From contig JBLDXI010000001.1 in NCBI GenBank assembly GCA_047495785.1, positions 2,108,001 to 2,172,000 of the forward strand: a stretch of 64,000 bases of DNA, given 5' to 3'. This document shows positions 1,110 through 49,165 of the stretch, piece after piece. The stretch's first letter is position 1, and each line of letters opens with the position of its first letter. This DNA is from Lepidodermella squamata. Lineage: Eukaryota; Animalia; Gastrotricha. The position numbers and the translations under genes are program-made. Under the pieces are notes generated by a model, which ran no database searches, was not told the DNA's origin, and saw nothing but the letters and a program-made list of their open reading frames with translations.

Positions 1110-4100
1110 TCAGGAAAGCTCGACAAGTAATGTGAACAGCAGCGCTGAAGAAACCAGCGTCGAAAATTGGAAAATGCTCATCGCGGAACTGTGTGCCTGT
1201 TCGTCCTCATCGGACCATTCGTACAGAGATATAGGAATTGCAACAGCATCAGATAAGGTAGTTGTGCTACTATGGCGCTTGGTCGATGAGCCCGAGTTGG
1301 TCGTGGTTTCAGGCTCACCTGAGGTCACTGTCGTCGAGGTTGTTGATTCTTCTTTCGCTGCCGTTGTTGTAGTAGTAGAGGGAGGGTTGGTTGTAGAGGT
1401 TGAGCTTGGCGTATTGGCGCCGGGGGTTCGGATAGGAACGGCTGGAGCAGGCGGTTTTGTCGATTGCGCAACCGCACTGGTTTTCGTTTTCAAATACTCA
1501 CTTTCAGCCGCATCAGCGTCTGGCGGCATTGAGCAGGGAGGTTCATTGGTCTTGCCTTGCATTTTCGAGACTGAATACATAGCTTCAGCTAATTTCTGGT
1601 TATTGCACACGTTTTTGATAGCCGAAGCCATACAGCCCGAAGATAAGGCGAACTGTTCGCAGTTGAGAGGCTCCGGGGCTGAGTCACCCTGTTTGCCACC
1701 CCCGCCGGGTATCAAATTGGCAAATTGGCCGAAGGAGGCGGAAAAGTCGCCATATGCAACGTTTTTGTAACCGCTGCAGTATTGCTGGTGAATATTGATG
1801 TCGTTATTATTACTCAGGCAATCAACGTATTGACTCAGCGCCTTGTCGACGCACAGGGTTGAAAGCACGGCTGCCCCGTCGCTGATAAGCTCTGGTAGAT
1901 TGGCGGGCAGTTTGGCGCCACCAGTTAGCCCGCCGAGCATACTCAATACACTCGGGCATTGCTGTAGAAGCTTGAGACACGCAAGAACTGAAGTGCTGCT
2001 TTTGCATAGAGCTTCGGTATTTCGGCGTAGCTTGGCGATGTCGTCTTTAGAGTAAGATCCTGTTTAGAAAAAATGGTCAATAGTTTTGATGGAAATTCAT
2101 GTAAAAATCGATATAGCACATAACAACCTACTAAGAATAACAACGCTCTTATTAGATTTCATCCATAAAGGTTTATCTAATTTTAGAGTTTATGCAAATA
2201 AAGCGGGAGTGTTTATTGGAATAAAAATAGAGAATCATCGATCCAAACCTACCTGAGAGAATAGCAATGAAAAACAAAAAGAGGCTACTTAAAGCTCTGA
2301 ATCTGATTGTACAAGGTTTAGGAATTATAGGAATAGGATTCCATAGGTTGTAGGAACTCGGTGATTTTTACATTTTCTACACGTTTTCGGAGGTCAAATC
2401 GGGTTTCAAATTGTGCAGAAAATAGCGAAATTTCTAAATCTAACCTGTTTTATCTTGCTTCGACTGAATTGTTGCCGTTTCATTCATCAAAGCTAGCAGA
2501 GTAGGAAGCTGACTTTGAAGAGGGAGACACGTCGATGCAACCTTGATCATTCCATCAGCCGGGCAAGCCGCCGGCTTCGTCGTTGTAGCCGATGGCGCTA
2601 CAACTGGCACAGTTTGAGGAGGACGAGTTGCCATTGTTTCAGCAGGTCTCGTTGCCACAGTTTTTGGTTTAGTTGTTGTTGTTGTTGTCGGTTTCGTAGT
2701 TGTCGTTGTCGTAGCCGCTTTGGTTGTAGTCCGCTGGGTAGTTGTTGTCGTAGTTGTTGGCTTCGGCGTTGTAGTAGCCGCAGGCGCGTTTTTCAGGTAA
2801 TCAGCCTCAGCAGCATCAGCAGTAGCCGGCAATTGGCACGGCGGCGTGTTGCCCTTGCCTTGAATTTTCGAAACCGAGTACAACGCATCGCTTATTTCTT
2901 TACCACACGTCTTCTTCACGGCCGATGACATGCAGCCGGAAAATTCGGCGAATTCGCGGCAATCAAACCCAGGCTTCGCCGCGGACGATCCTCCCTTTCC
3001 AGCGCCTGGTATCAGGTTGGAAAACGAGGAAAACGATGAGGAGAAGTCGCCGAACGACACTCCCTTATAGGTACTGCAATACTGGCTGCGAAAGTTGACG
3101 CCGTTGTTGCGGCCAATGCAGTCGACGTAGTTTGACAGGCCCTTTCTGGTGCACATGGTTCCGAGCAGCTCGACACCGTCCCCGATAAGTTCGGGCAAAT
3201 TGGGCGGTAACTTAGTGCCGCCGCCCAGCCCACCGACCAGACTCAGCACGCTTGGGCACTTTTGCAGCAGTTTCAGACAGTTCAACACCTGATCGCTGCT
3301 TTTGCACAACGTGTTTGCGCTGTCTTTCATTTGAGCTGGAAATAGAAAAGTAAGTCAATAAAGTTAAAGTCGCAACCAACTCATGTCAATTTTTCGGTGC
3401 GAAAGCCTAAGAATTTGAAAATTTAGCATAATAATCGCATCTACCATTAAGTGTCGAAATTACTCTAAACGTGATCGACTTTAATATCCACTTAACGATT
3501 TCTCTCATGGGCTTAAAGGAGGAACAAATTTTTCAAATTTTCAATTGTTCCTCTCAAAATCGAATTATTTCAACATTTTCGAGGATTTTATGATCATCTC
3601 ACGGCATTTAATTATCATCGTGATTAAAAACGATTCGAAATCTAACACTTTTACGATTTTCGAGCTTTGAGTTTTGTAGCAAGTTTTTGAATTCGGTTCC
3701 GTAGTGTTCAATTTTGGTTCCGCAGCGGGTTTTTTTGTCCCCGTAGTTGCGTCACTCTGGTGCACCGGGCTAAAAGTATATTTGCGAACCACTGGCCTCA
3801 ACTAAGTGTTGGGCGACTAAATCAATAAAGCAAACTAAGCCAATAAACTAAACCAATAAACTAAACGCACGGAACTCCAAGGAAATTATCATTATTTTTC
3901 AAAAATAAAAACTCACATATTTCACTTGCGGTGAAAGTGCCAGTTTTGTCCTGGATTCCCGATAATATCGACATTTGCGTCAACAGGCCCGGAAGTTGAT
4001 TTTGAAGTGGAAGGCAAAGACTGGCGACTTTCATGAGACCATCCGGCGGACACCCGGAATCGGCAGCTGATGCCGAGTTCAGTGAAATTAACAAAAACAA

Positions 4101-4166
4101 AATCTTAAAAATAGCCGTTGATGTGACTGCCATCCCAACATATCGTTGGGACTCCACCGTCGGCAT
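1110..4166 (-). CDS. Secreted, probably GPI-anchored surface protein with two tandem Cys-rich domains and Thr-rich stalks (about 696 aa; exons 4166-3917, 3335-2445, 2059-1110)
   Basis: Three ORF-track pieces join in frame across two phase-1 GT-AG introns. N-terminal hydrophobic signal (ILFLLISLNSASA). The domain CPxDG..VASxCLPLQ..LP/LCKS..CL.LL..CPS..LPxNLPELI..C occurs twice. Thr-rich linkers and a C-terminal hydrophobic tail (SSAMSIFQFSTLVSSALLFTLLVELS). Confidence 0.8.
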
Positions 4167-7100
4167 TTCTGATCCCTATAAACAAATAGCAATGGTAAAA
4201 ATAAATGAGCGTAATTACTACAACTGATGAATCAGTAATTAATGAAATGGAAGAGAGACTGTCCTACAATGGCTGGTATAGACTAGGCCAGCACTCGGAG
4301 ACAATAGAAGAGCAAAATCTGCAGCGGTGATGAACGCGGAGGCGGTGCACTTGTTGAGCACGCATTCATGAAAGCAGAAGCTTGAGACGAACACCATCAA
4401 TAATATAGCCCGATATCGGGTAAAACGGAAGGAGGGTACATCATAACACATCGGTAATATCCAAATGTGTTGTCTTTATAGCCCAAGGTAGCAGACGATG
4501 ATGATGACGTCGCATCAAAACGTGCCGGGCGGTTTTATATTATATGCGAGAAGATGAAGAGCTAGCCTGGTACCTGTATATATACTAATTATTCTGATGC
4601 GCCAAGCTGACATGTATTTTTGCATGGTTACGCTGCTACGGTGGATGGGAAAAAAGCTGATATCAAGCAGTAGTGTGCCGCATCTTGAGCCGCAATCGTT
4701 CGTAAGTAGAGTGTCTTGCTGGCAAGTAGGGGCGGCCATTTCTACTGCCTTATATATCACAAGTAGGCGCGCGTGCTGTCGCGCCAAAATGCGCGCAAAC
4801 ACGCCAGGCGATGACGAGTAGAAAAAATAGCACACGAAGATACAAAACCAAGCGCGGAAAAAAATTGGCCGGTGAACGTGCATTATAATGCGGCTAATAA
4901 TAAATAATCTCATGACAAATATTTGCGATAGGAAGTGACGATGGTCGGCCATCATCCTGGCGATTTTTTCAACGACCAACTTCATCATTTTACACACTTA
5001 TTATAAAAAGCTAGACAGGAAATTGTAATTGCCGCGCCTTGAAGAGAAAGCAATCTTCATTTTTACACCTCTTCGTTTATACTTCATTTTTCATTAGTAT
5101 TACATTATTACTAGTACAGCCGCAAGGAAATTTGAGCCGTGCGTGTGTTTACTCGGATATTTTTCATGTCGATTTCGGTTTCCGTGGGAGAAACGATTGA
5201 TTAAATTTTTTTGATAACTTGCTAGACGCCTCAGGTATACAGCATGTTTTGAGTGTGATGAATCGATAAATAAACGTTCACTCAGCGGCATCGCTTGCCA
5301 GCTGTGTCGACAATAAACTCCGGTTAGACGATGATGACCTATGCAATACATAAACAGCTGCAGCTGTTGTAATAATTATACGAGCTATAAATGTATTATT
5401 TTACTTCACGTCATACAACTTGGCTTAGCTGATCCTGCCTGAAACAAGTCATTTTTATTTCATCTGAAATGAATTTAAATAAGCACTTGAGCGGTATCAA
5501 AAATGGCCTAAATATCGGTTTGACACCATTTCATTTTTATCGCTAATTTTTGTGTTTATTAAAAACAGCCCACTATGCGTAATCTACAAGCAGCCTGGCC
5601 GCTTTTATCTCCGTTTTTCAACAAATGTTGATACAAGTTTTATCTATCAGACCCAATACAGGCTAAATATTGATAGCGCAAAACTATTACGCACCGCCGG
5701 CAATTTTTCAGAGTAGAAGTCGCGCCCTCTTGCTTAGTCACGCCGCGTCACGGGAATTTCGCCTCTCAGCTCTACCTTTCAGTAATCTGAGCTGCATTTT
5801 ATAGTCTTATGTACATAGCAATATGGCGTAGGAGAAAAGCTAGATTCCACCCGTGCGAATCGTTTCAACATGTTAGCAACTGCCTATCAGTATAAAACAA
5901 AGCCCCGACGTCTGTAAATATTTAACCTAAACAACAAAAATTAGGCCGAAAAAAGTTGCTTTGGTAATCTCAAATGGGCTGCGCATTTTCATACACGGGT
6001 AATTTTAATTGATACTCATCGCGCGATTGTCATCAGCTTTCAAATTTGGTTTTTACTCCGTTATGATAAATAAATCACAAGATAAATATTATTCGGCAAT
6101 AATTTATTTAGCTATTCCTGAAGCCTAAATTATGCACGGTTGCCGTGTTCATTCACTAAAAAGTGTCACTGTGCCAACACTGGGTTGCGCATATTTCTAG
6201 CAAAAGCTACATGCGCTAAAAACTAATATAGAAATCCAACCTTAGAAATATTGCCTACGACTTGAACACGCTCGAAAATTTTCTATATAACAAAGGTATT
6301 TAGGGTTATATAATTTATACACTGACGCACGCCCTCATTTTTTCACTCAGCCTCTGATTCCGATTCTTAATATAAAACTGGCTTGGTTTAGCATAAACTC
6401 GTCGTCAGCAGTTCGTAGACATGAATCATATTGATGTAGTTCCGATGAATAAGCACTATTTTTCATAGTCTAATTGAAAACCAGTGTGTTCATATATAAA
6501 ATTCGTTGTCTTCGACAAGTGTTTTTCTAGGCCAAAGCACATGTTCGTTTTTTATATCCAATCACTGCATCTGCGTCTCAAATTTCTTGCCGCAGCCCCT
6601 AATGGCAACTCCCCACGCGTTTGTTCACGCGGTTTCTTCCGACACTAGGCTATTTGTTTAAAATCGATGTAAATTTAGCCGTTCAAAGATCAAACATTTC
6701 AAGCTTGATTAAAAAACGTATGTGTCGGCTATATCATCGCTTTTTTACTACACTGGAAAAGGTGTTGAAAGCTTTTTTATAATAATTTAATATTTAACGG
6801 CAGAATCCTGATTTTTAACATGCCGCCTTCTTTGTCCCAACATTTTTTGAAGTTAAACTATCGTCTGATTGAATTTCTCCCACACGACCGGCGTTAGAGA
6901 TTAAATTTCTTATCCGCATGCAGTTGATTTGTTGATGTATACGGATGGCTGAGTGCTTAGTATTGATAATTTAATCGATAAAACTGTTTTCATTTCATGG
7001 ACATCATCGCGGTATATACATTATATACATCTCACAGTCGCCGCCTGCTATTCTATCATCGCGCTTGAGCAGAAATTTTAACCATGTTTACAATTCATTT

Positions 7101-31363: not shown

Positions 31364-31966
31364 CTAATCAGAGTAATATCTTCTCTTCGCTTCAATAATG
31401 CGGTTTCTTATAGCTTTTGTGTACGCTAGATCAATGGCAGTTTTGCCGTCAACATTTGCCAGGCGAAGGTCGGCGCCGAAAGAAATTAAAATATCGACGG
31501 CTTCGTAATAGCCGTTTTGAGCCGCAAACATGAGCGCTGTAAAGCCTGTTTGCGCTATCTTGGCATTAACATGAGCCTGGCGCCGCAACAACACCTCGAG
31601 AACCTCGACATGGCCACGGGAAGCTGCAGCCATAAGAGCTGTATTGCCGAATTCAGTTGTAGCATTGACTTTCGCTCCAGCATTGATCAGCATTTCGCAG
31701 ACGAGAGAATTCCCGTTGTAACTTGCAGCCATGAGTGCTGTATAGCCTAGGGTTTCGACCGATTTGTTTGGATCGACGCCATCCGCCAACAAGTTAGCGA
31801 CTCTGAGACGATCATCCGAACTTGCTGCTGTCCATAAAGAAGCTAAAGGGTCTACTGGTTGCATGACGAATGCAGAGTCTAACGTGGTGTCTTCATATTC
31901 ACGCTGCTCCCCTCTGCCAACGCCAACGTCAGTATGCAACACAGATTTTGCCATGACAAGTAACAA
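31364..31966 (-). CDS. Small ankyrin-repeat protein (3-4 repeats), single exon
   Basis: GYTALMAASYNGNSLVCEMLINAGAKVN, GNTALMAAASRGHVEVLEVLL, GFTALMFAAQNGYYEAVDILISFGAD, GKTAIDLA. Confidence 0.9.
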   Translation of the reverse strand: MLLVMAKSVLHTDVGVGRGEQREYEDTTLDSAFVMQPVDPLASLWTAASSDDRLRVANLLADGVDPNKSVETLGYTALMAASYNGNSLVCEMLINAGAKVNATTEFGNTALMAAASRGHVEVLEVLLRRQAHVNAKIAQTGFTALMFAAQNGYYEAVDILISFGADLRLANVDGKTAIDLAYTKAIRNRIIEAKRRYYSD

Positions 31967-37885: not shown

Positions 37886-39455
37886 TTTATTATCAACCTA
37901 ATATTGAACAATTCAACAGTTTGAGAAATAATATAGTGAAATGGGGGAATTTTTCTGAAATTTGTTGCATGAGTAACATGAGGATCACTTGTGACTCTTG
38001 ATGCTATTACGCAGTTTTGTAGTTAAAAGCGAGTTTGAATATAGAACATGTGTTGAAGGTTTACACTAGCACGGTGCTTTAGCTCAATAATAATACGTCA
38101 AGTGTCAATGTAAATTCGTGTTCACGTGGAGAGGTATAACAAAAAACGATAATATTTAAAACAGGTAACGGCTAGAATGTCTATATACTAATAACTGAGA
38201 CATTTATAATTAAAAAATGACATAAGGCATAACTTTGATTGCTGTGTCAGAAAACAGAATAGCTTGAAAAAAAACACGCAGATAACTCGATTTTTTCCAG
38301 GTGTGACTTTTCCCGCAGAACTCTTTCCCGGAACCGTCGAGGAGATAAGGCAGCTAAAACACATAAATAAATAGCTACTGATAACGAATGGGCGTGGCTG
38401 GGAAAATAATGGCAATTTTTTCATAATTAAAAATAGCTTAAGTCTAAAGGAAAATTCCAGTAATATACATGAAAAATATGGCTCTATTTTATGAGACATC
38501 ATTTACCAGTATTTTATAATCCCTGGGTAACCGCAGGCATTGCTTCATCTCATACTTGCATTAATCCTATACTCTGATTTCTCAGACACCTATTCAAACA
38601 TATAATAGCATGATGACGAGTCTGGCTTATATAGCTATACTTTTGGCAAAACGGATGGGTTAGGGAAAAAAGTGCGCCACATGCATATATTCACATCGTG
38701 AATATAGCACTGAGCTTTTTATTACAAAAAAGGAAATAAAATATCACGTATCTTTTACGCGTTTCCGCTTTTATATATAAAAGTCAAGGTATATAAACGG
38801 CCTTTCATTTCATCATTAAAATTTGCGAAACGTCAATAAAACCCGCAAATTTCTTTGTCCTTCAACTGTCAATAAAAAGAATTTGATCGCGAATCTGCCC
38901 CATGGCTTGTGCGGCTCGATGCGAAGTGGATTTGAAGCTGATTCGAACTGAAGTTAACATCCGCAGATAAATGAAGATTAACTCAAAATTATTGCTTTAT
39001 TTATATTTTTGACGCCGGCATGTCAAACATGGAACGACTGAACACGTTTTTAAAATTCAGCAACAGATTTGAAATACAAAGAAATGCGTCCTCTAGGCTT
39101 ACTAGGATTCAGATTGATTTGAGGATGAAAAGGCTTGAGATCGGCTACATAGAGTAATGGAAATTACCAAATTTTTCTCATTTTTCTCTAAATTTTAGCG
39201 AATTTGGGAAGTTGAAGAGGGGCTCGGTGACCGAGTCATTCCAAAATCGATGTTGAATCGGCTAATGGGAAAATCGGCAATGGGGAAAATCTTAACGCGG
39301 TACGGAATTTTAATTCAATACCCATCCATTTTAACCAATTATTTAAATGGTTCGGTTAGGTTAGGGTTCGGTTCGATTCGGGGTTCAAATCCCTCATCAC
39401 GCAATTTATCTCTTTCTTTTAAATCTGTCTGCTCACAAATTTTATCTCGCTTTAA

Positions 39456-40921
39456 CCCTACGAGGACTGAAATCTGGGCTCACATTCTAAGCTGAAGGGG
39501 CAAATTCCAACCCCGAAAACTAGGAAAGAATAACCAGAGAAACAGCATATTGTTCATAGGTTATTGTTGTTTTTAGATCATTATGAGGTAAAACTACGAT
39601 AGCCAACAATTTTTTGATCATTTTTAAATGCTCAAAAAGGGTAAAATCTTAATATAACTGGGAATGGTTACTATGGCAACAAAGGATATGTCCCGATGTT
39701 CTTGACAAGTAAACTCGCTGCAACTGAAGCACCGAATGACTGAATTTCGGTCCATTTTTCAAGGGCAGATGATTTATCGCCCGTTCTTGGGCCATCAACT
39801 TCGGCAAGTCGCGGCTTCTTGACGAGCATTTTGGTGCAATTCAGGTAAATAATACAGGTACGCGATGGCTCTTGTTAGACCAATGTACATCAACTAGCAA
39901 AGGCAATCCATTCGATTTCGTCGGCTGAAGTGTGATCGCCTCCGATGAATCGATTGTCCCGCGAACGAACAGCAATACGATCGATTCATGCGGCATATCG
40001 GAGGCGATCCCACTTCAACCGACGATACCGAAATGATGACCTTTCTTTGCTAGTTGATGTCGCATCCGGCCCGCTACCCGAGTTCCTCATCGCGAAAAGC
40101 CGCCAAGCATCAACTAAACAGGCGCCTCGTGGAAAACAAGCAACTCAATCTGATGCCTTTTGCGTAGGAAACGTAGCCCAAAGCCGACTCCTCATTACCG
40201 CCCACGGTAATGAGGAGTCGGCTTCGGCGTACGTTTAGTTCCACGAGGCGCCGGTTTAGTTGAAGCTTGACGGCTTTTCGCGAGGAGGAACTCGGGTAGC
40301 GGGCCGTTGATAGCAGCTGGGCCGTCGCTAGGATCGTCTTCGCTGTCGCAATCCGAACCTGACCCGGTATCGGTAGTACCATCTCGGCGTTTGCGTCGTT
40401 TGAGTACTCGATTTGAGTCGGATCCGGACATCTTGAAGTCAGAATCCGATCCAGAATTGGATGCAATTTAGTAGCCGTGTAAACCAATCCCGTAGAGACA
40501 TTTTGTAATTGGTAAAATTTAGTCAACTTGAAGGATAACATTTTCGGTAAATTAGTAAAACTTCAAGTTGGAATGGTAATTTCGGCATGTCTTTGACGCA
40601 TGTTCATCGTTCTGGTAACCCAGTAGATGTCGCTGCTGAATGGTTAACGTAATTATTGAGCAATTTCCAATACTATCCATGATAAACGCACTGAAAATTA
40701 TGGGGTCGGGTTTAGCCCCTTCAGCTAAAAACGTGACCAAAAATTAAGACTCAATTTGTGAGAAAATTATCAGCGGTAGATAAATGACATTTTGCAGAAT
40801 TCTTTCTCATGTCCTAACCTCCCTAGATCTGAAAGGAATTGGCTGAAATCGATAAGGTTGCTGAACTGTAACAAAAAAACGCGTTTTTCTCTCCTGGTTA
40901 CCCCAATTAGTCCTCGCAGGG
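39456..40921 (-). mobile_element. Non-autonomous piggyBac-like element with internal fold-back hairpins
   Basis: TTAA at 39452-39455 and 40922-40925. TIRs CCCTACGAGGACT / AGTCCTCGCAGGG. Subterminal inverted GCTGAAGGGGC / GCCCCTTCAGC. Short acidic ORF 40431-40195. Confidence 0.75.
39724..40305. repeat. Three tandem long inverted repeats (hairpins 39724-39844, 39887-40060, 40068-40305)
   Basis: Read directly. A 67-bp arm with 4 mismatches plus a perfect 20-bp stem (40181-40200 / 40205-40224, loop CCCA). ACATCAACTAGCAAAG / CTTTGCTAGTTGATGT closes the second hairpin. The first hairpin is more imperfect. Confidence 0.85.
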
Positions 40922-41120
40922 TTAATGCGAACGTTGACCCTAATCTGCATATTCACACTGAGCAGGTCGAAATTACCCTCGAAATTCGCCGAGTCATTTA
41001 CTCGTGAATATCTGAGCAGGAGAAGGTATATTTTTACCGTGATTAACACTAGGATATGCAGTTTCGGCGCAAGGTACGTCATCAAATTCATGCACCTCAA
41101 AAACGAAGCCCGAAAAATTA

Positions 41121-41931
41121 AGGAATTCTTCCCGGTGTTGAGGGCAGAACCGAGAATTCTGCCCGCTGAAAATGCCCGAGGGCGTAGCGGAGCGCAGCGA
41201 AGCGAAGCCCGAGGGTATTTTCAAGGGCTGAATTCGAGGTTTTGCCCGAGACACAAGGGAAGAGTTCCTGTTCCTTCCCAGTTGGTTATTTTCGTTAATC
41301 CGACACTCGGACGAGTGAAAATGGGGAATGGTGTATAGTGCGTATGAAAGATGACCGTTGTTAATAACGAAAATAAGAAATCCAGCTTAAAATTTGTAGC
41401 AAATTTTTTTTTTAAATTTTTTTTGTTCGTTGTTCATTTCCTTGTTTTATTATCAATTGAATATTGCGAATTTCCGTCGAATTTTCAATGGAGATCACTT
41501 TTGATATTGGCGACCTGGGCCTCGGTGCTCTCGCTGACGGCTCCGTGGAAGTGAAACAGCGCGAAGAATCCGATCCAATTCGACTTCTCGAACGAGAACT
41601 TGATGCTGATATCGAAGAAGAAGAATCCGATGAAGAGGGTGATACGTCGGAGTTCATTCAAGAAGTCGAAAATTTCGTGGCTGGTTTTGAAGCAAACGGC
41701 ACAGCTCAGAAAACCAAGCAGCACTGGAGCCGATTTGTCGCATTTGTCGAGCAGCGATTCCACATTTCGGAGCAACTATTAGTTGAACTTACGGTCAAGG
41801 ATATGGATCTCTATGTCGCTCTTTTTCTCAAGCAGTTGACGAAGACTGATGGTAGCGCGATGGAGCCGACAACGATTCGAGGCATTTATTCCTCCATCAT
41901 TCGCCATCTTGTAGTCGTTATTAACAATTAA
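41121..41931 (+). mobile_element. Crypton-type (tyrosine recombinase / DUF3504-related) transposon remnant with upstream palindrome; truncated ORF 41488-41931
   Basis: NGTAQKTKQHWSRF...MDLYVALFLKQLTKTDGSAMEPTTIRGIYSSIIRHL matches the Crypton/KCTD1/ZMYM N-terminal pattern (L..F....K.DG..YEP.T). The ORF stops before the catalytic core. Imperfect palindrome at 41121-41269 with a GCGAAGC core. Confidence 0.75.
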
Positions 41932-43662
41932 TCCGGCCCAAACACTTGTTTTAAAGTTTAAACATTCTAATAAAGGTTATTCACTTGTTCACTCGTTTGG
42001 TCAGAGTCTGAAGGTTGTAGTAAAGGGACTGGGAACGGAAATTGAAGTTGTGCAACATTATTTCAGGTGAGAGGTTTTCCCGAATTTTCGAGAGCATCAA
42101 TTGATTTTCGAAAATAAAAAATCCACCCTAATCGTTTGAGCGGGCAGAAACAGCGGGCAGAAACATCGGGCAGAATCACTTTTTCCGTCTAGGCAAAAAA
42201 TAACCAACTGGGCAGGAACGCTTTTTGTTGTCCGAAATAAGACCAAGTCTGATGAAGTTTTTTTTGAAAAAAAACCGAAAAGCTTAAATTTTTCTCACTC
42301 ATATATATTTTCAGGCGAGTTCTGTTGAACTTCGAAATTCACCGAAATCATGGCAGAAATAATTCTGCAAGGCTTTTCTTCTGCACAGTGCGAGGGATAT
42401 GGAGAAAAATGTGACATTCGCTGATTGCCGCTGTATAAATATTTCCCCCAATTTCCAATTCCCTATCGAGCCCTCGGAAAAACGTACGCAAAAAAGACGC
42501 AAATCACGCCGATTTTTTACGACTTTACAGTTGTACTCGAAATTAGATTATCATATTACAGCGCTTTCAAGTGGATGTCTCTCTCGGCTATTAATAACAA
42601 TATTGACATGGACACTCTTGAGATCAGCCATCGTTCGGCGGCACGGCAGAAAAACTTCAGCAGGCACGCGAAACAAGTGTCTCGCGTCATCTTCCCCAGG
42701 GATGCAACAACCATGTAAAACATCCGCCGGGCTTCGCGGCGCAATAACTCGGCCATGCTGCTCTATCATTACAACGATCATATTATTATACGAAATAAAA
42801 ATACATGAATAAAAAATTCGCCTCAAATGACCGCGACCGTTTATAGCATACACAATTTTTTGGCGCGCATATATTGGAAAATGGACACCTCTTTTTCTCA
42901 AGTTATTTTCTGTACATATGATAATTTTCGCAGTTCGTTTTTCACTGTAATCATTAAAAAAAATAAGCAGCGTTCTTGTTATAAAATCATTATTTTTCGC
43001 GTGTTGCGCTAATTTTTCAAGATAAATATTGCGACTTCCGCGCCAATTTTGCGCTTGAATAGCGCGTGTCGACACGTGTGTATGATATGCGGATGTGCGT
43101 CTTAATTCGCGAGACGCTTACGCACCCAGGCACATGTTTCCCCCAAGTCGCAAAAGGCGAATGATACACCCTACTTATTTTGCTTTATTTATACAAATTG
43201 GCGTAAATACTCCGCGTATAAGAGTCCCTGTTTTAGCCACGCCATATTCGCTACGTCATAATATTATAATATACTATGTATATATCGGTAAATTACAATG
43301 TTTATGCAGTGTGTGTATGTGTGTGATAATACGAATTATATCGGCGGCGCGTTGTTTTACGTTCCGAAACACGCGAAACATATATTACGACGGGCCAAAA
43401 TCTAGGGAGCTGCTACTTGCCTCCGAGAAATGTAAATAGCGAATCATCAAACGATATGATGATTATTCCCACCGCGGCCTAATAATGGCTACCTATTATT
43501 ATCTGTTGCTTTGTTCCTACATACATTATTTTTTGCGTGTTTCATCCGCCATAAAATAATATAGCTGATTTTTATCGAAAGATAAAGATGATCTTTGATG
43601 TTAACGCGGTAATTGCGATGTTATATACTAATGGCGAGTGCATCACCTGGGAAGGCTGAGCG

Positions 43663-46600
43663 ATGAGAAAACGCCAATGTTACATTGTTTTCATCACAAT
43701 TCTTTCATCGGCGTTCTTTCTACATTGTCACCACCCGGTTCTTGGTGGTAAGTTGACTTGGATGTTGTAGTAACCGCAACGAGCTTTATCTTTGGTTGCT
43801 TTTATAGCAAATCAAATCGGCAAAGTTTGTAAAGATGACGACGAATGCGGAGAAAATGAACACTGCAGCGTTCCGCGCCTTGTCAAGCCGCCGTGTACCC
43901 GGGGCAACTGTGTTTGTCAACCATGTTTCGCGAACAAAACTGCTACTTCGAATTGCGAGCCAAGTAAATTTCATAGTTCATTTACTAATTTGTAAATTAA
44001 TGCTATTTTAACGGGCAAAACTAGCTGCGGCTGTGTGCACCCTAAATTTAAGGTTCCAGCGCTATATTTGAAACTCCATTTGAGACATTTAGAAATTTAG
44101 ACCAGTTTTTTATTGAGTTCGATTGGAATAAGGAATAACCCATCGAATTCATTCGGCCCTGAGTTCAACTGGTATGAGATCGATTCATTCGGTCCTGAGA
44201 TTTCACATTGGAAGTCACTTTTCATCTCTGAAGGTACCAAATCGCTACCTAAATGAAAAGGTTAAATTTAGGGTTCCAGTACTAAATTCCAGTCAAAATA
44301 TGGTTTCCCGAGTTTCTAGCTCTTATCTAAGCTCCAATGTTTGATTATCGGACCTAACTGATAGATTTCACTTTCACAGTCAGTTTAAGAATTACACTTT
44401 TCTGCTGATTTAATTGCAAAATCTCGAAGTTAGGGTGAAATTCTTTAGTTAAGCGCTGAGTTAGGATTCATTTTGGAGTTTTGATCGATTCATTGTCTAA
44501 CCATACCTTATTTTCTGATCTTTTCAAAGTTCACTTGGAAAGACCATGTGATCTAGCGTGCCACAACGGAACGCAGCCGTACGAAGAGTGCGACGATTGG
44601 TGCGAAGACCAGCCACCGCTGAAAATGCTGACGCCCAACTCTTACTGCCAGAGCTTCAACCGCGGCAAGCTATCACGCCGCACACTCTGCATCGGCTGCT
44701 ACGAGTCGCGAAACCGGCGCTGTGTGCCGCAGTTTGAACTCGACTTTAAGGCGGAGTGCGACGCCGACTGCGCGTGCGCCAGTAACCTGAAATGCAACGG
44801 CAAATGCATGTGCTTGACGACGAACGAACATTGGGACCCGGTGAAGTTGACATGCGTTCGGCGCGAGCTCGATGACAAGTGCCTCAACGACAGAGATTGT
44901 GATGTTGACCCGGGTGATGCTGAGTATGGGCCATTCTATCGCGGTTTAGCCTGCGTGAAAGGTCATTAACATCCATCTCTTTTTTCACAAATTTCAATTA
45001 ATTGTCTTTAATTAGGTCAATGTAAATGTGCGGCGAATTTCACGGCGACGCAGGTGACTTATCTGGATGACAATGGGGCGCTGACCACCCGGCTGATTTG
45101 CGTCATCAACACGGCTAGTGTTAAGCTGACCGAGCGTGAAAAGTGTACATTCAAAAATATTTACGATGGCAAATACGCGTCGACGAAAATCTGCGCGCCC
45201 GGCCTACTATGCATGTCCTGTGTTAACAACCCGACAAAAATATGCCGTAAATAGTTGGAATAATTATTTTCAAAAAATTTACACCGTTTCCCTTTCAGGT
45301 AAAGTCATTCCTGGTGGTACCAATTTAAAAGGTAAATTTCGATTTTTTGAATTCAGTGAATTTTTTGGATTTTTCCAGATTTTAAAATGTGCGACAATAA
45401 TTTGACTATCGAGGCCGGTCCTATAGATTATATGCAGAAACCTAAAGTTGGAAACGGTTAGATTTCTTTGGTTTCATGATAAGCCATTGTCATTTCGGGT
45501 TCAATTTTCAGACTGTGGTAGAGATTCTCACTGCGGGCCGAATGAAATTTGCCACAAGACAAGTGTGACCCCGCCGTGCCTTGAAGGATCCTGTTCGTGC
45601 CAGCAATGCCACGCAGTTGGACCCGATAATTATTGCATTCCAGGTTTGTCAGTTCTATTCTAAATTCCATTGCAGATCATCAGGGGTTATTTTTGATTTA
45701 AACAAAAAACCATGAGCCAGTTTCCAGTTTCAAATTGCTCATCATTAGCCGTGACCTACTTTTTACCAGCATCTATTATTGCTATGATTCATTATACAAT
45801 TAGGTCAACAAGTGTTTTTGAGGTCAAAATGCTCGATTTCGGACAAAAATCGGCCGTTGAAGTCGACTTTATGTTTGCGAGATCAAGCCGACTCTAGTGA
45901 AATAGAGTTGCCCTTTTGTTCGAGAATCTTACCGACATGATAAAGTTAACTTATAAAGACAGCTTCGAAAATTGCCCTCTTTCATGGCTTACTTTTTTGC
46001 TATTTCAGTTATATTCGGGAAATTTACTCCAAAAAGTTTTCTGTTTTAGAATGCTATTGATTTTAATTTTCCGAATTCGATTCGATCAGCGATAGGTTAA
46101 TAGGCTAGCGATTTTGTAGTGGTTATGGAGTATTTCCTTGGAAATTGACCTTGAAAGAAGTTGAAATTTAGGTTTTTTCCAATTTTATATTAGGAGGAAT
46201 AAGCACTTTTTAAGTAATCATATAATTCTCTCCCCATTTTTAGTTCAAATATTACCGCTCGGTGCACCGTGTAAAAATTGGCTCGGAGTTGAAATTTACC
46301 CGGAAAATGCCGGTTGCAAAAAGGGCATCGTTGCCTGTAACATGTATTACAAACAAGCAGCTGATGATAACAACAAATGCGAACCCGATGCCGAACACTA
46401 CGCCATGCCGGGCGAGGACTGTACGTCGACAGCCAACTGCTTTGGCGTCCTCATCTGCTCGGCATCAGTCGTCATGACAGCCTCGATGAACAAACAGCCG
46501 CGACAATGCGGTTGCCAGATCGGTGACAACCAGCGGTGGGACCCCAAAGTGCGCAAGTGTGTCGGGCCGAAATTGGGTGATTATTGCACCCGCGATTCGG

Positions 46601-49165
46601 AATGTACAGCCTACGAACTTTTGCCACCATCGGCGCAAAAACGCGTGTGTATCGACAATCAATGCGCGTGCGGCCCGGAGATGGCTGAATACAAGGGCCA
46701 ATGTTACGCGCCAAGTGTGTCAGACACGTGCCCCCACTGCCCGGAGGATCCTAGAAACGCACCTTGCAGGGGTAAGATATATCAGGCCTGAACTCTGAAC
46801 TATATTTCTAAAACTATCATTTTATGTTAAAAATTTCTCTGAAACTATGTATAGAAGGTAAAAACAGTCCGCTTTTTCTCACGCTTTTTCTTCGACAAAA
46901 TCCACCTTAAATCACGCTTTTCTGTTCTGAGCCACTTTATAGCTCATGAGAATCAAGCGTATTTTTCCAGTTTTCTGAGATTTTTCCTCTATTTCTTCTA
47001 ATATCAAGCCTCCTTCATCATCGAAGATGATAAAAGCGACCATGATCAAGGTAGGTTGCATCTATCCTGAATGTCGTCCTCTGACTCTATATGCCTCCCC
47101 TTGAAAGATTCGTGTTTAGCGGAATTATCAAACGCCTTGATCAAAGCCGAACGAGCCGCCAATCAAACGACATGCGTGCGTTTTTTGGAGCTTAAAAAAA
47201 TGTTCAATATTTTCTCTTTACTTCCTCGCAGAGTGCCAGTGCAAAACCTCCAGAGGAAAATAAGCTAGATCAATGTTTGTCGCGTTTTTTGATAGGAATC
47301 AAATGTTCAGGTTTCAATTTTTTAGTTTGCCTCGCTGATGATGAATGTGGCCCAAATGAATTCTGTCGTAAGGACGATTTTATACCGCCGTGCCAGTTTG
47401 GAAAATGCACCTGTCGGGCCTGCTACGACATCGGTTACAACAATACCTGTGCTCCAAGTTAGTTTTTTGTTGAAAATGCTAAAATATAAAATGCACAAAA
47501 AATATTATGGTCCAAAATATAAATTAAACTCCAAATTAAATTCCTCTGATTAAATTAAATTTAAGAAAGAAATTAAAATTGAAATTGAAATTATATTTTT
47601 AAATTTTGTGCTATTTCATGAACTTCTCATTATGTTGTGCAAATGTAATTTTATTGATTTTTTGGAAGTCGTCGTAATTTTTAAAAGGGAGTACCAAGTG
47701 GGCCCCCTAAATTTAGGGTTCCAGAACTAAATGTGACACTCCAGCACTAGATTGCCCCAAAATAAGGTTTTTCGAGTTTCTAGTGATCACTAGACTCTAA
47801 TTTTTTGCCTAACCGATAGACTTCATATCAGGTACGCGTATTTTGCGCTATGAGCGGTCAGTTAACGAGTTACACTTCATGTTATAGAGCCGATATCGAT
47901 TCCAAGCATCAATTTTACAAATCAGTGATTTTCCCGATATTACCAGCCGTCTTGGAACCCAGCATCGATAATTTTTCTACGTAGCTTAAAGGGCACCATG
48001 TAGCTAAAATTAAAAATCCTAATATCAGGGAGGGCATCAGTATCGATCAAAATACGAAAACGCCGAAATCGCATGGAGTCTGAAAAATTTACTGCTGGAA
48101 CCTCATTTTTGATGGTGCAAATATTTGTTTCTTTTAAAAATTTAAAATTAGAATTTAATCTTTATTTTTTCAATGAATTTTTCTATTTTATTTTTACACA
48201 AATTCCTGCCAATTTTAGCGACCATAATGACGGTTGGCTCGATGTGCTTCAATCGGCCAAACGAGCTCTACCAGCAGACAGTCGCCGACGTAGAAAAAGG
48301 CCTCACGCCTCTATTCTGCGACGCCGGCATCGTCCGCTGCAGCCCGTGTTTCAACTACGAAGAATCAACCGGTTTATGCAAATTGGCGCAAAAAGCGACG
48401 CAAAAGGAGGGTGAACCATGCGAGACATCATGCGATTGCCTCGGCCAGGGCGCTATGATATGCGGCTCCGACAGCCTGTGCGCGTGCCGCAGCATTAGCG
48501 AGCTGTTCGACGAGGCAACGCAACGGTGTAAACCCCGTGAATTGTGGACACCCTGCACAACGCACGAAAATTGCAATAATTCAAGTTTCACAATCGACGG
48601 CGGGCTGTGCGCGAATGGCTACTGCGCTTGCCGCCAGCTGTACCAGGTAACAACGACGGGCATCTACGACGGCATGTCGATATCGACGAAACAAATATGC
48701 GTGACGTCTCAGGCGAAGAGCCACCTTAATCGAAAACTCGGCGCAAATTGTATCCCAGAACCTATGCAACACGCTAGTGCTTTGTCGCAGCTTCAAGGCG
48801 GCGTTTGTAGCTCAGGATTAGCCTGCATCGCCTGTGACGGAGATTACGAGCCGAAACCGACGAGAGGCTATTGCCGGAAATTTACCGAGACGAGATCGTG
48901 GCTATCGAGTAATTTACGCACGAAAACAGAGTGCGCACTGGCCCTTGTTCGAAGTTATTCATCGAATTCCGCCCCGAAACGAGCTGTTGAAAAATCTCCT
49001 GTTAACCCCTTACAACCGTCTAAAAGCAAACAGCCATCTTATAGCATTAACGACGCAATTTTAAATGGATCGAATCATTTAAGGACAGCTAGGCTAACTA
49101 GTTTTCTTTCCTTGCTAGGAATGCTCGGTTTCAAAGTTTCAGAATTATTCTGGTACCGACTATAA
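43663..49165 (+). CDS. Secreted, probably GPI-anchored protein with three Cys-rich (EB-module/EGF-like) repeat units (about 890 aa; exons 43663-43747, 43808-43963, 44530-44961, 45016-45246, 45299-45331, 45512-45643, 46244-46771, ~47326-47457, 48219-49165)
   Basis: Signal peptide exon. Phase-1 GT-AG introns keep the frame. Each unit opens with C..D..CG.NE.C......PPC..G.C.C..C and contains C....DC/NC..L.C...C.C....WDP....C...L...C..D.DC. Hydrophobic C-terminus. The 46.8-47.3 kb junction is uncertain. Confidence 0.72.
44030..44400. mobile_element. Degenerate intronic copy or copies of the dispersed MITE family
   Basis: CACCCTAAATTTA(A/G)GGTTCCAG motif at about 44038 and 44265, plus internal family sequence. 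Confidence 0.55.
47687..48130. mobile_element. Intronic copy of the ~400-bp MITE family (reverse orientation)
   Basis: Reverse complement of 36428-36838 over most of its length. Confidence 0.75.

Follow-up and report, generated by a model that had tools for sequence, protein, structure and literature searches.

Paired internal hairpins in a non-autonomous piggyBac-like element of Lepidodermella squamata as a probable trace of snap-back repair

Structure and class of the element

The window analysed here, a stretch of 64,000 nucleotides from the gastrotrich Lepidodermella squamata, carries at 39456-40921 an element that, judged by its structure, is a non-autonomous piggyBac-like element. A search with this element of the animal's own assembly (121 Mb in 151 contigs) recovered four dispersed copies and one fragment of 165 nt on contig 32. 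The four are the window copy (1466 bp) and copies on contig 20 (1447 bp), contig 23 (1286 bp) and contig 50 (1146 bp). The features of the window copy are as follows.

39452-39455: left TTAA target-site duplication
39456-40921: the non-autonomous piggyBac-type element, 1466 bp
39456-39468, plus strand: left 13-bp terminal inverted repeat starting with CCC, identical in the contig-20 and contig-23 copies
39471-39514: left sub-terminal inverted repeat, partner of 40702-40745; its core is kept in all four copies
39887-40060: hairpin 2, with left arm about 39887-39957, apex loop about 39958-39976 and right arm about 39977-40060
40061-40066: 6-nt joint between the two added inverted copies, common to the contig-20 copy
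40067-40306: hairpin 1, made up of an added left half and an original right half
40067-40204: added (left) half of hairpin 1, with outer arm 40067-40134, inner arm 40169-40200 and 4-nt loop 40201-40204
40135-40168: 34 unpaired nt of hairpin 1, kept in the single-arm copies and gone from the right arm
40205-40306: original (right) half of hairpin 1, with inner arm 40205-40236 and outer arm 40239-40306
40431-40198, minus strand: ATG open reading frame of 78 aa with an acidic low-complexity start, open only in the window copy
40702-40745: right sub-terminal inverted repeat, 163 nt inward of the right end
40909-40921, minus strand: right 13-bp terminal inverted repeat, ending in GGG
40922-40925: right TTAA target-site duplication

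A preliminary description of this DNA had bounded the element by TTAA and by 13-bp terminal repeats that begin with CCC. Both are present at these ends, and the repeats are complementary at 12 of 13 positions in the window copy and at 13 of 13 in the contig-20 copy. Terminal inverted repeats in the piggyBac superfamily measure 12-19 bp (PMC5381638), and asymmetric sub-terminal inverted repeats have been described for piggyBac itself (PMC5381638); the sub-terminal pair found here spans 44 nt at 75% complementarity and is likewise placed asymmetrically. Membership of the superfamily is thus indicated by the TTAA duplication, by a terminal repeat within the 12-19-bp range and by insertion at multiple unrelated sites, while a sequence link to an autonomous piggyBac, in the form of shared ends or a transposase remnant, was not found in the animal's own genome. 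The same features, together with the lack of a transposase and the presence of inverted duplications, bear out the earlier view of a piggyBac-like derivative with internal fold-backs. With non-autonomous PBLE and piggyBac MITEs the family shares the TTAA, the 13-bp CCC...GGG terminal repeat, the asymmetric sub-terminal repeats, the lack of a transposase and the several dispersed copies (PMC5381638). It differs from them in that no autonomous parent can be named, two of its four copies contain long internal fold-backs, and one copy is bordered by TTAG on both sides. On the left, 16-nt short tandem repeats (39349-39380 and 39256-39287) adjoin the insertion site of the window copy.

All full copies lie in unrelated flanking DNA and each has its own 4-bp target-site duplication, which is TTAA in three of them. 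Around the contig-23 copy (C23:956918-958211) the duplication reads TTAG rather than TTAA on both sides, which suggests either a non-canonical insertion site or an improbable pair of identical mutations. Pairwise K2P distances over the flanks that the family copies share are 0.055-0.18; the copies are about 5-18% diverged. The differing insertion sites, the separate duplications and these distances together indicate a small, old, mobile family. No transposase domain was detected in any of the four copies; elsewhere in the genome there are at least 78 matches to PF13843, the piggyBac transposase family.

Internally the element had been described as three tandem long hairpins. Two of these stand, with stems of about 100 bp (hairpin 1) and about 75 bp (hairpin 2). 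In hairpin 1 the outer arms (68 nt) are 94% complementary and the inner arms (32 nt) 91%, and the last 20 bp of the inner arms pair perfectly and close the 4-nt loop, in agreement with the arm of about 67 bp and the perfect 20-bp stem reported before. This hairpin folds at -190.6 kcal/mol (z -23.3), and its right half has the orientation of the single copy at the contig-23, contig-50 and contig-32 loci. The stem of hairpin 2 consists of 16 perfect bp followed by 48 nt at 83% and 13 nt at 92% (-101.5 kcal/mol, z -13.1). Collinearity with the single-arm copies extends over its left arm and loop; its right arm is the added copy, which we read as a snap-back product. Folding of the whole of 39700-40450, a check proposed earlier, gave -390 kcal/mol (z -20.4). 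The third proposed hairpin, at 39724-39844, was rejected: the segment has no inverted repeat and folds at -33.8 kcal/mol (z -1.96), and 7 of 200 shuffled sequences were equally stable. Neither strand matched Rfam 15 at gathering score; only generic hairpin matches of at most 32 bits were obtained, against cut-offs of 58-77 bits for the miRNA families concerned.

The minus-strand reading frame that was said to run into the fold-back does exist (40431-40198) and is overlapped by hairpin 1, which may thus cover a 5' coding remnant, but in its present frame it is not the remnant of a conserved gene. It is open only in the window copy because a deletion of 1 nt between 40378 and 40379 fuses two frames there; in the contig-20 and contig-23 copies, which do not have the deletion, the reading is split and stops fall in frame. 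Compared at the protein level with the animal's own genome, the 78-aa frame matched family loci only, and so did an open frame of 132 aa from the contig-20 copy. A phmmer search of the 78-aa frame against 1.84 billion representative proteins yielded no genuine match. The single sequence listed, a 925-aa tandem-repeat frame hit 13 times by one 19-residue stretch, was set aside as a chance match inflated by repetition. Pfam found nothing in seven reading frames of the family. The suggestion that the frame encodes a transposase N-terminus therefore gained neither a phmmer relative nor a Pfam domain. Since the N-terminal 130 residues of piggyBac transposases are unalignable (PMC5381638), that identity cannot be shown by such comparisons, and it is plausible from position and composition.

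Hairpins across the copies and the order of events

Self-inverted matches were found in the window and contig-20 copies, and none was found internally in the contig-23 and contig-50 copies, which carry each arm once. On folding, both long stems reappear in the contig-20 block (z -20.9) but not in the equivalent contig-23 block (z -2.1). In the two single-arm copies the left arm and loop of hairpin 2 come first, followed by a junction and by the right half of hairpin 1, in which the 34 nt are still present. The junction lies directly after an inverted repeat of 8-13 nt in the hairpin 2 loop and within a couple of bases of the hairpin 1 apex. Because each arm is present once in these copies, the hairpin copies can be described as the single-arm form with a single insertion of about 220 nt at the junction. 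This insert is composed of the inverted left sequence, a 6-nt filler (40061-40066) and the inverted right sequence, so that in the hairpin copies the two hairpins stand back to back around the junction position, with the segment order A, A-inverted, R-inverted, R. Such an order would not be expected from an inverted copy of one contiguous segment; it would be expected if two broken ends had each folded back and copied themselves and had then been joined.

The window and contig-20 copies have in common the 6-nt joint, the 34-nt asymmetry and all four mismatches of the outer arms. Between the two copies the right arms are 96% and the left arms 90% identical, compared with 85.5% for arm against arm within the window copy and 78.6% within the contig-20 copy. 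The arms thus group by orthology and not by copy. Together with the common joint, asymmetry and mismatches, this grouping indicates that the duplication occurred once, before the two copies separated, and that the rearranged element transposed at least once afterwards. The claim that the hairpin form is mobile is accordingly upheld by two loci that share both hairpins and the 6-nt joint.

A stretch of 15-32 nt bears on which form came first. The single-arm loci on contigs 23, 50 and 32 have it and both arms of the hairpin copies lack it, as would follow most simply from one deletion and a later duplication. We therefore take the single-arm form as probably ancestral, with moderate confidence, the polarity being based on this one indel argument and the contig-32 fragment in a set of four copies that has no true outgroup. 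The reverse order, in which the two-hairpin form was ancestral and gave rise to the contig-23/50 form through cleavage of both hairpin tips and loss of what lay between the apexes, appears unlikely. It agrees with the position of the single-arm junction at or near both apexes, where cleavage of the tips and joining would yield the form seen on contigs 23 and 50, and a single event would suffice since these two copies share the junction. However, to be absent from both arms the 15-32 nt would then have to have been lost twice in parallel or removed by conversion, and in their flanks the copies on contigs 23 and 50 (K2P 0.13-0.16) resemble each other no more closely than they resemble the hairpin copies.

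Decay of the arms and search for a target or parent

Between the window and contig-20 copies the arms have diverged by K2P 0.04-0.12 and the flanks by 0.055-0.104. The earlier proposal to look for compensatory changes between copies gave a negative answer: in hairpin 1 none of the 16 variable columns was compensatory, 11 pairs were lost only in the contig-20 copy and 3 only in the window copy, and pairing of the contig-20 hairpin 1 has fallen to about 79-85%. In hairpin 2 the central 33 nt of the contig-20 copy are inverted relative to the window, contig-23 and contig-50 copies (31 of 33 positions agree after reverse complementing). The arms of the contig-20 hairpin 2 are nearly identical, and one change is present on both of them, a double change that points to conversion between arms. 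The flipped loop and the homogenised arms argue for recombination between the arms of a DNA palindrome and not for selection on an RNA stem. Maintenance of pairing by compensatory change, as looked for in hpRNAs and other selected structured RNAs, was not seen in this comparison of two copies, which has low power. The arms appear to drift as fast as the remainder of the element, without maintenance. Nothing in their sequence argues for constraint, and a selected function is probably lacking.

We compared the whole element, both of its ends and the hairpin block with the 121-Mb genome at the DNA level and obtained only the four copies and the contig-32 fragment. It had been proposed that the arms would lead to an unrearranged source, namely a full-length piggyBac or a host gene. 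Unrearranged relatives were indeed found, namely the single-arm copies on contigs 23 and 50, both of which are non-coding, but neither a full-length piggyBac nor a host gene was among the matches of the arm sequences in this genome. The proposed target in trans, whether the element's own family or a host gene, likewise failed to appear, the arm sequences occurring only in four dead copies and one fragment; the search covered one assembly, and a target could have existed in other individuals or in the past.

No recognisable autonomous partner was found in the genome. The comparison with possible parents covered 20 piggyBac transposase loci of the same genome. One of these, on contig 7 (C7:1017000-1026999), contains a degenerate piggyBac transposase with in-frame stops at locus positions 4088-5666, flanked on its 3' and N-terminal sides by two weak, collinear, same-strand DNA matches to the element (43 and 47 nt, about 81%). 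At the protein level the comparison of this transposase with the window element gave no support. This transposase may be distantly related to the lost parent.

A pattern search for the terminal repeat that allowed 3 mismatches returned additional sites on contigs 4, 21 and 55. At C4:2675285 and C21:445787 a TTAA is followed by a terminus that differs from that of the window element at 3 of 23 positions. We rejected these two elements as relatives: they have about 220 bp in common with each other, resemble the window element in the terminus only and contain no transposase reading frame. Probably they represent a separate family of short piggyBac-type elements whose ends are related.

Origin of the hairpins and the silencing hypothesis

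From the structure, the distribution of copies, the orthology of the arms and the absence of targets, all observed in the assembly, we infer that the window element is a decaying non-autonomous piggyBac-type element which underwent a double snap-back at one break, later moved and has since decayed neutrally. We give this reading a probability of roughly 0.68. The ancestor would have suffered an internal deletion and carried each arm singly, much as the copies on contigs 23 and 50 do today. A DNA break at or beside the internal deletion junction would have followed in the line from which the window and contig-20 copies descend. Each broken end would then have folded back and served as the primer for synthesis on its own strand (snap-back synthesis); for hairpin 2 the priming was presumably done by the 8-13-nt inverted repeat that abuts the junction. 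Each end would have copied 70-135 nt of itself before the two were joined through the 6-nt filler. The rearranged element would have been mobilised at least once and would afterwards have been subject to drift and occasional arm-to-arm recombination. That the break fell exactly at the old junction because a short palindrome is fragile is our guess.

A precedent exists in Drosophila, in which snap-back synthesis from short inverted repeats beside a break produces longer inverted repeats (PMC5728401). The likeness to the snap-backs of synthesis-dependent microhomology-mediated end joining lies in the role of a short inverted repeat beside the break as primer for synthesis on the same strand (PMC5728401). 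The insertions of that pathway are mostly a few to tens of nt, in contrast to arms of about 70-135 nt in the window element, where moreover both ends of one break appear to have been copied. If the reading is correct, the window element would offer a clean natural example of the birth of an internal fold-back in a cut-and-paste transposon, from two snap-backs at one break through carriage by transposition to decay and flip-flop of the loop.

The preliminary description had viewed the locus as a silencer. On this hypothesis it is a working or former locus of the Mu killer or hpRNA kind, whose transcription, starting in a neighbour or at the 5' end of the element itself, would give hairpin RNA; Dicer would cut this RNA into endo-siRNAs that silence the family's transposase in trans. 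We consider this quite unlikely. Several observations are consistent with it. The two long stems are very stable and occur in both the window and the contig-20 copies; the hairpin form has moved; hairpin 1 overlaps a possible 5' coding remnant; and the autonomous partner is missing, as would be expected after successful silencing. The genome also has an RdRP: a cellular RdRP domain (PF05183, E 5e-115) lies in an uninterrupted frame of 912 aa (C14:268123-269604), so that hairpin transcripts, if made, could be processed and amplified by the host. Transcription of either strand would give a two-stem dsRNA of about 420 nt that Dicer could cut, with the other dead copies as its sole match in the genome.

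Against a silencing role stand the lack of a target sequence in the genome, the uncompensated decay of the arms at a neutral rate, which has reduced pairing in the contig-20 copy as given above, and a reading frame that is not tied to any transposase. Comparison with Mu killer itself is also unfavourable. In Mu killer the duplication takes in the terminal repeat together with much of a live transposase gene, and the locus, which is fixed in place and transcribed by read-through from a flanking gene, has live targets (PMC3440606). The window element is likewise an inverted duplication of part of a transposon, but its terminal repeats are not duplicated, no recognisable gene was identified within about 5 kb of it to supply the read-through that Mu killer needs (PMC3440606), and in the animal's own genome the duplicated part was found neither in a live transposase gene nor in any other genomic target. 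Its arms are about 70-135 nt of unidentifiable sequence inside an element that has moved, and they decay neutrally. The likeness to Mu killer (PMC3440606) and to the Ac/Ds cases (bioRxiv 10.1101/2020.01.07.897926), in which siRNA silencing is triggered in maize, extends only to the presence of inversely duplicated transposon sequence, from which transcription would yield a long hairpin RNA. Because the arms and the reading frame occur nowhere else in the 121-Mb genome, a Mu killer-like role would be left without a visible target, and the window element should not be filed as a Mu killer-type locus. Drosophila hpRNAs, as outlined in PMC10317233, are long inverted repeats that Dicer-2 can process and that are born by inverted duplication of their targets. 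The long inverted-repeat hairpins of the window element resemble them in this respect, but the Drosophila loci are transcribed units with recognisable target genes, and no such target was found for the window element in its own assembly. With no gene or intact transposon to silence, and with hairpins that look like inherited scars of DNA repair, the element is probably an ordinary one.

Repair and silencing might also be combined. A hairpin made by repair could have turned the element into a mobile source of dsRNA whose spread, with RdRP-assisted RNAi, helped to extinguish the autonomous parent. The window copy and the others would then be fossils of a self-propagating 'killer' transposon, and the missing parent would be explained. 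We regard this as very unlikely. To our knowledge, no mobile hairpin-bearing element that silences its own family has been shown in animals, and for this reason small RNAs from the arms together with a target, if found, would raise the importance of the locus. As it stands, the window element gives no evidence for a new silencing system.

It is highly improbable that the arms are a fragment of a host gene captured by the transposon in the Pack-TIR manner, with the hairpin directed against that gene. Animal DNA transposons do take up host fragments by template switching, as outlined in PMC8277862, but in the 121-Mb assembly the arms have no further match outside the family, as DNA or as protein, and the search of the 1.84 billion representative proteins also speaks against capture. 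The chance that the fold-backs are an assembly artefact is negligible: palindromes can come from chimeric long reads, and a perfect one on contig 73 is a candidate, but here two unlinked loci, about 5-12% apart (K2P 0.04-0.12 by region), carry the same two hairpins, the arms are imperfect and the decay is specific to each copy.

The contig-73 palindrome (C73:518991-522929, reversed) covers a piggyBac transposase copy with a perfect inverted repeat whose length is 1.3 kb or more, a lower bound since one arm reaches the start of the extracted locus. Its arms, at locus positions 1-1329 and 2013-3339, are 100% complementary and 683 nt apart. The transposase family concerned has four near-identical full-length copies, on contigs 55, 44, 67 and 73. 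Either the palindrome is genuine, a very recent inverted duplication whose targets are live, or it is an artefact of fold-back in long reads. As a young transposase sequence with live relatives, it is a much better candidate for the silencing idea than the window element. The genome seems to hold several transposon-derived palindromes.

In the wider neighbourhood of the window element, the nearest reading frames with Pfam support are an ankyrin-repeat frame (31364-31966, minus strand) and an EB-module frame (46342-46791, plus strand). About 190 bp to the right of the element, 41111-42226 is a very young dispersed repeat, 96-100% identical at no fewer than 25-30 loci among the matches listed. 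Pfam gave no match for its reading frames, and it appears to be internally deleted relative to copies of about 2.1 kb, such as the one at C31:923790-925912.
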